Assembly (NCBI GenBank): GCA_025594325.1
Contig: JANHCV010000001.1
Location: forward strand, 2,852,001-2,916,000
Direction of reading: 5' to 3'
DNA: 64,000 bases
Source of the DNA: Blastocladiella emersonii ATCC 22665
Taxonomy: Eukaryota > Fungi > Blastocladiomycota
In this document: piece by piece, positions 35,356 through 39,290 of the stretch
How the letters are laid out: each line of letters begins with the position of its first letter
Numbering within the stretch: the first letter of the stretch is position 1
The notes under the pieces: generated by a model
Databases searched by the model: none
The model's input: only the letters and a program-made list of their open reading frames with translations
What the model was told of the DNA's origin: nothing
Made by a program: the position numbers and the translations under genes

Positions 35356-35820
35356 CTACTGAATGAAAATCTCGAGGATGCGCTTGCGCTTCGATTCGGA
35401 CACGGCCATGACGCGAAGCGCTTGATCCTCGGTCAGGCGGGTGGCGACGTCGATCTGGTACTCTTCATTGTCGTTGTACGCGTCCTGGACCCATTCAAGT
35501 GCGGCGGTCAGGACGGGCTTGGAGTCGGCGGTCGCGACGCTCTGGAACACCTCCTTGATGCCCATGAGGAATTCCGAGTCCGAGAGGCGACGCGAGCTGC
35601 TGTCCGAAGTGCGGCTGCGCTTGCTGGCGGGGGCCGCGTCGTCTTGACCATCGACACCTTCCACGTCACCAGACTCCTTGCCGTCCTGCTCGAGGTGCGA
35701 GTACTCGCCGGTGGTGGTCGAGCCGCCCCACGAAGGAAAACAGCGTTTATATAGGCCGGGAAGCACAGCCTGAAGGTTTCGGGGGCGAGCAGACGGGCAA
35801 TTCAGCGACGAGGGTTCCAT
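35356..35820 (-). CDS. Harbinger ORF2 remnant (C-terminal part of Myb/SANT-like accessory protein)
   Basis: 154-aa ORF convergent with the transposase inside the TIRs; LYKRCFPSWGGSTTTGEY resembles the end of Myb/SANT-like domains; domain body absent. Confidence 0.6.
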   Translation of the reverse strand: MEPSSLNCPSARPRNLQAVLPGLYKRCFPSWGGSTTTGEYSHLEQDGKESGDVEGVDGQDDAAPASKRSRTSDSSSRRLSDSEFLMGIKEVFQSVATADSKPVLTAALEWVQDAYNDNEEYQIDVATRLTEDQALRVMAVSESKRKRILEIFIQ

Positions 35821-35918
35821 TCAGCTCATCCGGGGGTCGACCCAAACGCCGCGATGAACGCGACGGGGTGAAAATGCCACGTTTCAGCTGGGTGAACACC
35901 GGACCGTGTAAAATCGAT

Positions 35919-35954
35919 TGATCCACCTGATTCACCCCGGAACCAAACGGGCCC
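35919..35954 (-). repeat. Right subterminal motif and right TIR of the Harbinger element
   Basis: TGATCCACCTGAT (35919-35931) and GAACCAAACGGGCCC (35940-35954) followed by TTA. Confidence 0.95.
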
Positions 35955-35971
35955 TTATTCACTCTCACGTC

Positions 35972-38900
35972 TCACACCACCGCGTCCCGCACAAGCTCAA
36001 CGGGTACACTCAGCGTCACTGCGACCTCGAGCGCGCCGCTGCTCCCGTGCGGCAGCAACGTCACGGTCCCATGGCCAATTCGCGACACCATCTGAAGCAG
36101 CGCCGCGAACGTGAGGTGCACGTTGCCGAAGCCGGACCCGCGCGACCCGAGCGTCAAGTCGAGCGTGCTCCCGTTCCCGCCGCCCGCCCCGTCGGCCGAG
36201 TGCGCGTGCCACGCACGTTGGTCGCAGATCTGCTGCAGCGACTGCGGCATCTCGGGCGCGACGCGGCTCAGCGTCGACTTGAGCGTGATCTCGGCGCGGT
36301 ACCCTTGCGCTGGCGGCGGCGGAGGTTGGCGGCGCGAGGGAAGCGACGTGGACGAGGTGTTGCGCAGGCGGCGGTACAACCCGCCAGCCGCTGCGCCGGC
36401 CGGACTGCTGCTTGGATCAGCGTCAGCGGTGGTGGCCGTAATGGACGCGACGGCCGACACGAGCCAGCGCGCGTGCGGCAGCGCGAGGCCGATGCTGACC
36501 TCGACCGTCTTGGTGACCACGTCGCGGATCAGCTTGGCCACGGCCGCGGATGGGGCGAACGTGGACCCGGCTGCGGTGGCCGCGGCGGGAGGCAACAGCT
36601 GCACGTCGACGAGCACATGTAGGTCCTTGTTGCCGACCTTGCGCTGCCTGCCCGCGAGCGCCGCGGCGATGGCCGCGCGCAGGACCGCGTCGAGCGGCTC
36701 CCGGCCCGCACTCACCGCCGCTGCGGGCTCGCCGGTCCGCGGGAGCACCACGTCCGAGAACTCGGCCACGTCGCCGAGCACGTCGACCATATGCTGCGCG
36801 GCCTCGCACGCGTCGTCGAGTTCGGCGGGCTGCCCGGCGGCGACGAGCGCCGCGTTGCCCGCGACGAGGTCCGCGAGCATCGCGCGCGCGGGCTCGTACA
36901 CGCTGCCGACCACGAACTCGAGCAGGTTGCGCCGCGCCTGCGCCGAACTCGTGGCCGCGCGCTCGAGGGCCGCGGCCTTGCGCATGAACTCGGCGCGTTC
37001 AGAGATATCGTGGAACAGGAGCACCTGCGCGAGCCGGCGGCGCTGCGGACGCGTGCGAGCGGGCGCGGCGGCAGTGGGTGGTGGTGGTGGGTCGATGAAG
37101 GTGGCCGCGGAGCTTGCGAGCGTCGACTCGGCCGAGTCGTCAACCACGCTGACCGAGAGCTGCACGACGAGCGTCGACCCGTCGCGGCGTCGGATCACGC
37201 CCTCGCGGGTGCCCGGCTCGAGCGTCGGCGGGCGCAGCAGCGTCGATGGCGAGGTCGACTTGGACGTGGTCGCCGTGGACGAGGAACCACCGCTCCCGCT
37301 CCTCGATACCGACACGCCGTCTTCGTCGAGCTCACCCGGGGCGCTCTCGCGCGGCGCTGCCGCCGGCGCCTCGGACTCGTCCGACTCGAGGACCAGCCCG
37401 ACGTGCGCGCGGTCGAGATCGTCCATGTCGTACCCCGTCGCCTCGAGGGCCGCGTCGTTGGCGCCCATGATGGTGCCGTGAGCGTCGAGCAGGAGCATCG
37501 CGTCGGGAATTGCCTGTGTGATGGCCTTGGAGTAGTCCTGGAGCGTGCCGAGCAGGCGCTCCTGGGCGCGCACCTCGCGGAGCATCTGCTGCGACGCGAG
37601 GACGCGCTTGAGGCCGTGGCGTACGAGCTCGGCGGCCACGACAAAGACGGCGAGCACGACGCCGAACAGGACCCACGGCCACACGGTGCTGAACCGGCGC
37701 CGGTACGTGCGCGTCGGGATGCACTCGACGCGCCACGGGTCGAGGCCGGTGGCGGCAAACGACAGCTGGTAGATCTCGGACTGGTCGAGCGGCTGCGGCT
37801 TGGCCGGGCTGAACGTGTACGCGGGCGCAGCGAGGCCCGGGTAGTAGATGCGCAGGCCGAACGCGTTGGGCTCGACCTCGTCCTTGGACCGGATCGTGCC
37901 CAAGATCGCGCCCGTGAACAGGTCGTGCAAGTCGAGGCCGATGGTCACCAGCCAGCTCGTGCCCGGCGTGGTGGCCGTCGGTTCCCGCTTCGACACGGGC
38001 AGGCAGAGGAAGATGCCGAGCGCGTTCGTGTCGACGAAGCGCAGCGGCTCGCTCACTTGGAGGGTGCCCGTGGCCAGGGCGGCCATGGACGGCCCGCGAC
38101 GCAGCGGGTCGGAGAGGAAGTTGAGCCCGAGCAGTCGCGACGGCGACGTGTCGTTCCAGTATCTACAAGGTCCCCACTCTCGTGAGTGCGATGATGGCTC
38201 ACGTCCGTGGCGGCGAAGACGTACACGAACGTGGCCACAACCGACTGCTGGTCGCCGGCCGACAGGTTGCCCGGGCTCGGCCACACGCGCTGATTGTACC
38301 GCGCCTCGTACGCCGGCAGCTGGTCGTTGTCGATGACGCTGGCGAGGCAGAAGTTGTAGAAGAGGCTCGGATCGAACGACGACCGGTTGCCGAACGCGTA
38401 CACGGCCTCTACGTTCGTTCGTTCGTAGCATCAGTCCCGGTCAGCGAACCCGTGGAAATGAGAGTCACACGCACCATTCGTCAGCTCGGGGGTCGCGAAC
38501 GCGAACGCGGCGAGGTTACGCAGGTACTGCACGGACCGCACGGCGAACACGGCCTGAAGCGACTGGACCGTGATCTGGCACGACGTGGTAAAGTCGTGCA
38601 GGAAGGTGCGCCGCTCGACGGACCGGAACCACAAGCAGAGTCCCAGCGCGGCGGCTACACGCATGTGATCGAGCAGGATCAGCGCTTATCGGCTCTCCTC
38701 GCCGCAAGCGAGAGCAGTAGCGTACCGAACCCGACGAGGAACACGAGTCCAGCGCCAACGAGCGGGATCAGGCGCACCGAGCGCACGCGCAGCCCGCTCG
38801 CGCCCACCATGCGGCGGAGCAGCCGGTCGAGCTTGGTGTCCCACCCGTCGAGGCTCGCGTGCGCGCTCTGGATCCGAACGTGGCCGCCGGGCGGTCGCCC

Positions 38901-39290
38901 ATGGCCATCACCGCCTTGACTGCGGCCGCGACCACTGCCGTCGCGGCCGTCGGCCCCACTCGCGGCGTCTGCCCCGGGGCCAAACTCGGACGCGTGCGGG
39001 AACGGCCACAGGTCGAGGTTGCGGAACAGCGTGTGCGAGGTCTCGGCGCTGTCTGCTCGCGCATGGCCGTGCCCGTGCGCTGCTGCTGCTGGGGCTGCGG
39101 CGCACGGGAGCAGCAGCGGGCCGCGCGACGATGCGGAGCTGGTGGCCGAGTCCGGGTTCTCGGCGGTCAGGAACCGATCAAGGCCGATCGGCGCCGGCTG
39201 CCTTGGCGGCGGCGGCGCGTGGTCGGAGCGTCCACCGTCATCTGCTTCATCTCGGGCGACCGCGCGAGCGGGGCGGTCTGCGGTGTCCAT
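35972..39290 (-). CDS. CHASE-PAS membrane sensor with degenerate (pseudo) histidine kinase module
   Basis: TM1 LIPLVGAGLVFLVGFAAALGLCLWF; CHASE-like LLGLNFLSDPLRR..MAALATGTLQVSEPLRFV...GIFLCLPV; TM2 VWPWVLFGVVLAVFVVAA; PAS AIPDAMLLLDAHGTIMGANDAA...FHDISER; DHp/HATPase-like remnant; 3 short introns at 38.1-38.8 kb. Confidence 0.75.

Follow-up and report, generated by a model that had tools for sequence, protein, structure and literature searches.

A CHASE-PAS receptor of Blastocladiella emersonii with a degenerate histidine-kinase module and no receiver domain, and its relatives in Blastocladiomycota

Hybrid histidine kinases with a CHASE domain, i.e., homologues of cytokinin receptors, were published for early-diverging fungi including Catenaria and Allomyces (Herivaux et al., 2017, PMC5285503). 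A spliced gene of Blastocladiella emersonii ATCC 22665, which lies on the minus strand at positions 35972-39290 of the 64,000-nucleotide stretch analysed here (the window) and corresponds to the GenBank entry H9P43_001073 (P0001), raises the question how a CHASE receptor might signal if the catalytic residues of its kinase module are lost and a receiver is missing. A first-pass annotation of this DNA had proposed a pseudokinase sensor rather than a phosphorelay enzyme. This is supported by the present analysis: the protein combines a CHASE-PAS sensor with a module of the fold built from a dimerization and histidine phosphotransfer (DHp) domain and a catalytic and ATP-binding (CA) domain, which lacks the phospho-accepting His as well as the N, G1, and G2 boxes and is not followed by a receiver.

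From the N- to the C-terminus H9P43_001073 consists of a transmembrane (TM) helix, CHASE, a second TM helix (TM2), PAS, and a C-terminal module of 360 residues. The CHASE domain (PF03924) reaches 38.3 bits against a Pfam cut-off of 25 (E 1.5e-9, residues 220-351) and is flanked on either side by a hydrophobic 19-mer, with starts at residues 123 and 419. Moreover, PAS_8 (24.0, cut-off 21.8) and PAS (23.5, cut-off 22.6) both pass, confirming the TM-CHASE-TM-PAS layout that had been read from the sequence before. The PAS domain ends in LFHDIS, which is the usual junction between PAS and kinase, and TM2 together with the juxtamembrane helix forms the stretch that is best conserved among the paralogues. 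The top sequence match among solved structures is the sensor domain of Arabidopsis AHK4, which is weak (E 0.016), followed by FixL-type PAS domains. Membership in the CHASE family carries no information on the identity of the ligand, and cytokinin is a candidate ligand only.

The last 360 residues show no Pfam match of any kind even at E 10, be it to HisKA, HATPase_c, or Response_reg, and the ancestry of the module is therefore argued from profiles and fold. Of the four domains for which a profile check had been proposed, CHASE and PAS are found while HisKA and HATPase_c are absent at this threshold. Four independent lines lead to the kinases. First, the module can be aligned over its full length with less closely related proteins of the same genome that give HisKA matches and carry receivers. 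Second, the profile of this family alignment matches ZraS (E 3.2e-4), a GacS-type kinase (2.8e-3), and KdpD (3.7e-3) in the PDB with both the H-box and the G2 region covered. Third, hhalign of the family against four canonical B. emersonii kinases results in E 6.1e-5 and a probability of 65% over 249 columns. Fourth, the AlphaFold (AF2) model (pLDDT 76, pTM 0.68) places a helical hairpin in front of an alpha/beta sandwich, i.e., the topology of DHp and CA. Using this model, Foldseek retrieves GacS (4.8e-9), followed by the kinase-related modules of the plant phytochromes A and B and by RetS, ZraS, DivL, and HK853, and VIA-align gives Z values of 12-13 against kinase modules. The hairpin of the antiparallel model helices 18-72 and 80-99 aligns with the DHp domains of GacS, ZraS, RetS, and DivL. 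The CA-like part aligns with the catalytic domain of ETR1 over 138 of 150 residues (Z 12.5, root-mean-square deviation (rmsd) 3.5) and with the CA domains of PhoQ, ThkA, and VanS at Z 11-12 and an rmsd of ~3 Å (2.7-2.9 for PhoQ), both by VIA-align. As judged from these profiles and the predicted fold, the C-terminal module is a histidine-kinase transmitter by origin.

The residues on which catalysis by such a transmitter depends are replaced. In the H-box stretch LLEFVVGSVYEP a Gly (36907-36905) stands opposite the His of the canonical B. emersonii kinases and of the His-bearing kin, as the first-pass annotation had stated for the phospho-acceptor position. The hhalign map shows Lys and Val at the two N-box Asn positions, R-V-A-P-E instead of DxGxG in the G1 box and N-V-H-L-T-F instead of GTGLGL in the G2 box; the loss of the N-box Asn and of the G1 box noted earlier is thereby borne out. 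The N-box Asn is absent from all 27 aligned family members, and HATPase_c is not matched by any of 14 family members at E 10. The Gly-rich stretch that had been described as a G2-like remnant (GSGFG) does exist, but was misplaced: as part of GSRGSGFG it belongs to the ATP-lid region just upstream of the true G2 position and does not represent a retained G2 box. Furthermore, the frame terminates with TGA at 35974-35972 without the C-terminal receiver that characterizes a hybrid kinase, in line with the earlier claim. The 22 matches to the receiver profile (PF00072) in the genome include none on the contig of H9P43_001073 (C1) and none near any of the ten family loci. A kept fold, lost catalytic residues and a sequence conserved between species are the features of a pseudo-histidine kinase, and all of them are found in H9P43_001073.

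Within the B. emersonii genome, the last exon of H9P43_001073 finds nine further loci with 43-52% identity. Seven of them, including one identical pair, are open and could be aligned; these intact paralogues, with identities of 39-52%, all carry Gly in place of the His and share their end point. Two virtually identical receiver-less copies lie in inverted orientation 130 kb apart (L005 and L006, C15:1078061-1080208 and 1210885-1213032), which points to a recent segmental duplication. Another two inverted paralogues, 85 kb apart (L003 and L004, C18:1068262-1070028 and 1153843-1155615), are identical in their CHASE, PAS, and DHp-like parts and diverged in the CA-like part, with a synonymous divergence (dS) of 0.27 and a ratio of non-synonymous to synonymous divergence (dN/dS) of 0.31. 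This pattern suggests recent gene conversion across the 5' two-thirds. In two copies the reading frame shifts inside the CA-like part (L013, C15:1618167-1620306; L014, C11:2214649-2216579), and GenBank lists the one on C11 as separate fragments; these two are probably pseudogenes or assembly errors.

Other CHASE-PAS genes of this genome carry a receiver and the H-box His (Arg in two of them). They form a tandem cluster on C15 (2.573-2.600 Mb) and a tandem pair on C4, with single genes on C15, C11, and C19. The N-box Asn is lost in all of these and none gives a HATPase_c match. HATPase_c is matched by no other CHASE gene found in B. emersonii either, although several keep His and receiver. Canonical hybrid kinases with intact boxes are present elsewhere in the genome, which also encodes a single histidine-containing phosphotransfer (HPt) protein. 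This sole HPt match borders the tandem cluster (C15:2572873-2600000; L011, L016), with ~350 bp between it and the 3' end of a CHASE-PAS-His-receiver gene.

Beyond B. emersonii, word-based protein searches with the C-terminal module and with the sensor half returned B. emersonii proteins only, since low-complexity words filled the candidate list, and a full profile search was therefore needed to find the kin in Catenaria and Allomyces. The profile of the seven open B. emersonii copies was searched against 1.84 billion protein representatives and gave 18 matches at E <= 1e-30. The 20 best matches, including these 18, are from Catenaria anguillulae, Allomyces macrogynus, A. javanicus, A. arbusculus, and Sorochytrium milnesiophthora or are metagenome proteins. 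For the Catenaria and Allomyces proteins Pfam reports CHASE and/or PAS only, and they end without a receiver; HisKA and the receiver are kept in the Sorochytrium proteins. In a maximum-likelihood tree of 26 rows and 458 columns all receiver-less proteins fall on one side of a branch with a support of 99/97. Inside this clan the sequences group by genus, Blastocladiella being sister to Catenaria with Allomyces outside both, and the seven B. emersonii copies are an expansion of their own. The receiver-less clan is conserved across the sampled Blastocladiomycota genera Blastocladiella, Catenaria, and Allomyces. The search for orthologues with the same loss, which had been put forward as a check, was thus answered by receiver-less kin in Catenaria and Allomyces, nearly all of which lack the His.

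The canonical His site itself is occupied by different residues. All seven receiver-less B. emersonii proteins have Gly, whereas two Catenaria proteins have Gln (P0009, P0019), five Allomyces proteins have Arg, Gln, Gln, Ser, and Arg, a metagenome protein has Asn (P0017) and one further Catenaria protein has His (P0008, ORZ37743.1). Because Gly, His, Gln, Arg, Ser, and Asn all occur there among the clan members, the position, as far as the alignment tells, is free to vary within the receiver-less clan. P0008 is the only receiver-less member with the canonical H-box His and is nested among His-less kin; either its His was kept while it was lost several times independently elsewhere, or it reverted.

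Other positions of the module are strongly conserved. All 16 receiver-less members have a His on DHp helix 2 (36793-36791), which also occurs in some of the receiver-bearing kin. Between genera hardly any variation is seen in the lid motif L-D/E-L-x-L-G-S-R-G-S-x-F-G-N, and of the 24 residues shared by 14 or more of the 16 clan members H9P43_001073 retains all. For the closer paralogue pairs the Nei-Gojobori method gives dN/dS values of 0.17-0.32 in the DHp-like part and of 0.28-0.66 in the CA-like part.

By analogy to known pseudo-histidine kinases, we regard it as fairly probable that H9P43_001073 is a receptor in which a CHASE-PAS sensor is joined to a dead kinase-derived module and which signals via a protein partner rather than by phosphate transfer. 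The protein would be a dimeric type-I membrane receptor with an extracellular CHASE domain between two TM helices and a cytoplasmic PAS domain after TM2. Its output module, a descendant of a DHp and CA transmitter, is predicted neither to bind ATP in the canonical manner nor to be phosphorylated at the canonical His position, and it has no receiver to pass phosphate to. Binding of a small ligand might shift TM2, the juxtamembrane helix, and PAS. This shift might alter the conformation of the DHp-like bundle and of the pseudo-CA domain, and the altered conformation would be read by a protein partner, with contacts that probably involve the conserved lid surface as well as the DHp-like bundle. 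The likeliest partners would be the CHASE-PAS kin bearing His and receiver, or else canonical hybrid kinases, of which the cell has few. The receptor would then tune the phosphorelay running over the single HPt without carrying phosphate itself, similar to the action of RetS on GacS or of DivL on CckA. The first-pass annotation had named a decoy, a heterodimer partner, and a scaffold as possible roles, and all three remain candidates.

Several points weigh against signalling through a partner. The mechanism of partner binding is drawn from analogy only, and the hhalign probability that connects the family to canonical kinases is moderate. Given the canonical His of P0008 and the invariant His on helix 2, some phosphotransfer chemistry might persist. 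Finally, dN/dS of H9P43_001073 versus its nearest paralogues amounts to 0.36-0.97, values that are unreliable with synonymous sites near saturation and a strongly GC-biased codon usage. Pairwise dN/dS was for these reasons set aside as uninformative for this gene. Because of the saturation and the codon bias, selection on the H9P43_001073 copy itself is seen mainly in the retention of sequence motifs.

Alternatively, the receptor might serve as a scaffold for an effector outside the two-component systems and might have no link to a phosphorelay at all. Its pseudo-kinase module would then bind and control another enzyme, e.g., a Ser/Thr kinase as for the plant ethylene receptors with CTR1. An established precedent exists in plants, where subfamily-2 ethylene receptors have degenerate kinases and some of them lack receivers. 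The catalytic domain of ETR1 and the kinase-related modules of phytochromes are among the best structural matches, and the most conserved element of the module is a surface lid loop and not the catalytic pocket. However, the likeness to the CA domain of ETR1 reflects the shared fold only, a candidate effector was not identified, and the co-existing kin with His, receiver, and the same DHp favor cross-talk inside the family. We consider such a scaffold unlikely.

A role as phosphotransfer protein appears quite improbable. Here, the His on helix 2, or the canonical His in case of Catenaria P0008, would be phosphorylated in trans by a kinase or a receiver, and the bundle would act HPt-like or as a phosphate sink. 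The presence of the helix-2 His in every receiver-less member and in some receiver-bearing kin would fit, as would the Gly-rich motif conserved at the position of the ATP-lid. Yet no ATP-binding residue is left, an invariant buried His may be merely structural, and the helix-2 His is located about four helical turns nearer to the hairpin loop than the canonical site, as estimated from the helix boundaries of the model and not from coordinates. To our knowledge there is no precedent for an acceptor on helix 2 of a DHp domain. Even more doubtful is the idea that this His and the lid motif (SRGS.FGN) constitute a new active or binding site on the old fold, i.e., an HPt-like centre or a non-canonical pocket for nucleotide or phosphate. 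If true, this site would stand for a CHASE-gated fungal signalling chemistry unlike any described two-component step.

That the gene is a non-functional relic, i.e., a decaying duplicate or a receptor whose receiver was cut off by the adjacent Harbinger transposon, is highly improbable: the transposon does abut the 3' end, two further copies of the family appear disrupted and dN/dS versus the nearest paralogues is high in places, but no stop interrupts the 2.2-kb last exon, the frame is maintained across the splice junctions, every clan-conserved residue is retained and the receiver is missing from all paralogues and the Catenaria orthologues too, which share the same end point.

Compared to known systems, signalling of H9P43_001073 via a partner would have parallels in bacteria and plants. 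With the published fungal CHASE hybrid kinases (PMC5285503) it shares the TM-CHASE-TM sensor in Blastocladiomycota; those are described as full hybrids, whereas H9P43_001073 has neither the phospho-His nor the ATP boxes nor a receiver and carries a PAS domain between membrane and transmitter. The receiver-bearing CHASE-PAS kin (C15 cluster, C4 pair, Sorochytrium) have the same CHASE-PAS-DHp-pseudoCA plan, are alignable end to end and lost the N-box Asn as well. In contrast to the receiver-less proteins they have an intact receiver and still the H-box His, except for Arg in two of them, and they are placed outside the receiver-less clan in the tree. Bacterial DivL (PMC4211667) and RetS (PMC8498467), both top structural matches, likewise have a kinase fold without normal autophosphorylation and signal by binding other two-component proteins. 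They differ from H9P43_001073 in their bacterial origin, in the type of sensor domain and in the CA motifs, of which more is preserved, and the shared superfamily is the only evolutionary link. High structural matches are also seen for the subfamily-2 ethylene receptors (ERS2 type) and the kinase-related module of phytochromes, which differ in their sensor domains and in their independent origin. In these eukaryotic proteins a sensor is coupled to a degenerate, His-less kinase module, in some without a receiver, and the output proceeds by protein-protein contact. The sensor of the ERS2 type is an ethylene-binding TM domain with GAF, and that of the phytochromes is a bilin photosensor. The literature search yielded nothing on a receiver-less, His-less CHASE clan or on this family in Blastocladiella. 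The H9P43_001073 family adds a new fungal version to the known pseudo-histidine kinases.

None of the CHASE receptors found in B. emersonii has a recognisable ATP-binding domain, and an entire clan that also occurs in Catenaria and Allomyces is devoid of His and receiver as well. The CHASE receptors of early-diverging fungi were considered as hybrid kinases that sense cytokinin. Proposals of hormone sensing in such fungi therefore need another biochemistry for these receptors, i.e., partner binding or draining of phosphate and not kinase activity. Signalling in zoospores can be studied well in B. emersonii, a tractable model organism, and the family thereby gives access to a eukaryotic example of how pseudo-histidine kinases relay a ligand signal. 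The annotation of the clan's proteins reads 'hypothetical' or 'PAS domain S-box protein'. They are expected to escape surveys seeded on kinase domains because their Pfam profile consists of CHASE and PAS only.

The window has the base composition of GC-rich eukaryotic DNA, and the protein encoded in it is 100% identical to H9P43_001073. The last exon (38162-35972) is a single open frame of ~730 codons, and the junctions of three introns read from the DNA reproduce the GenBank protein exactly. Individual exons were searched separately, and the whole-protein scans ran on the GenBank entry. Within 38726-39290 the GenBank model takes out one extra small intron and uses a different start. The positions of all features are given in Table 1.

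Table 1. Features of the H9P43_001073 locus in window coordinates.
Feature	Position	Strand	Basis
Whole gene H9P43_001073	35972-39290	minus	Open reading frames, sequence, 100% GenBank match; exact start codon and 5' exon uncertain
5' coding part: low-complexity cytoplasmic N-terminus and TM1	38726-39290	minus	Hydropathy peak from residue 123
Intron, donor GTACGC, acceptor TAG	38655-38725	minus	DNA reading; junction agrees with H9P43_001073
Exon: remainder of TM1, then N-terminal helix of extracellular CHASE	38475-38654	minus	Alignment with AHK4 sensor domain begins here
Intron, donor GTGCGT, acceptor TAG	38409-38474	minus	DNA reading; H9P43_001073
Exon: middle of CHASE	38225-38408	minus	DNA reading, H9P43_001073, Pfam
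Intron, donor GTACGT, acceptor TAG	38163-38224	minus	DNA reading; H9P43_001073
Start of last exon: C-terminal half of CHASE and membrane-proximal extracellular part	37685-38162	minus	Pfam CHASE in this exon, E 2.4e-7
TM2	37622-37684	minus	Hydropathy, paralogue comparison
Cytoplasmic PAS with long low-complexity insert	37001-37555	minus	Pfam PAS_8, PAS, PAS_9; alignment with FixL PAS
DHp-like helical hairpin	36758-37003	minus	AF2 model (helices 18-72, 80-99); matches to kinase DHp
Gly codon at phospho-acceptor His position	36905-36907	minus	Alignments
His on DHp helix 2	36791-36793	minus	Invariant, 16/16 receiver-less members
CA-like alpha/beta domain of the Bergerat fold; N, G1, and G2 boxes lost	35987-36712	minus	VIA-align, hhalign residue map, no Pfam match
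Family signature LDLTLGSRGSGFGNV.LTFAAL...R.G.G, ATP-lid/G2 region	36068-36163	minus	Kept from Blastocladiella to Allomyces
Native C-terminal tail SVPVELVRDAVV, followed by the stop	35975-36010	minus	Same ending in paralogues; spliced out in GenBank model

At the 3' end, the Harbinger transposon starts ~14 bp beyond the stop codon. In the GenBank model of H9P43_001073 the codons of the last 12 native residues are treated as the start of an intron, and 115 residues of the Harbinger ORF2 (open reading frame 2) are fused on (window 35356-36010, minus strand). The native tail removed in this way (V-P-x-x-V-R...stop) is common to the paralogues, and the fusion is therefore probably a chimeric annotation artefact, as far as this comparison of sequences allows to judge; a real fusion to the transposon was rejected as less likely on the same ground. 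Moreover, a loss of the receiver to the Harbinger element was rejected. There is no receiver downstream, nothing is truncated because paralogues and Catenaria orthologues stop at the same point, and the transposon did not take away a receiver because the entire clan has none.

On the opposite strand, open frames of 456-520 amino acids run antisense over the gene (plus strand, window 36111-38185) and are rich in Arg, Ala, Gly, and Pro. They are the usual by-product of coding DNA with a high GC content at third codon positions (GC3) and not genes.

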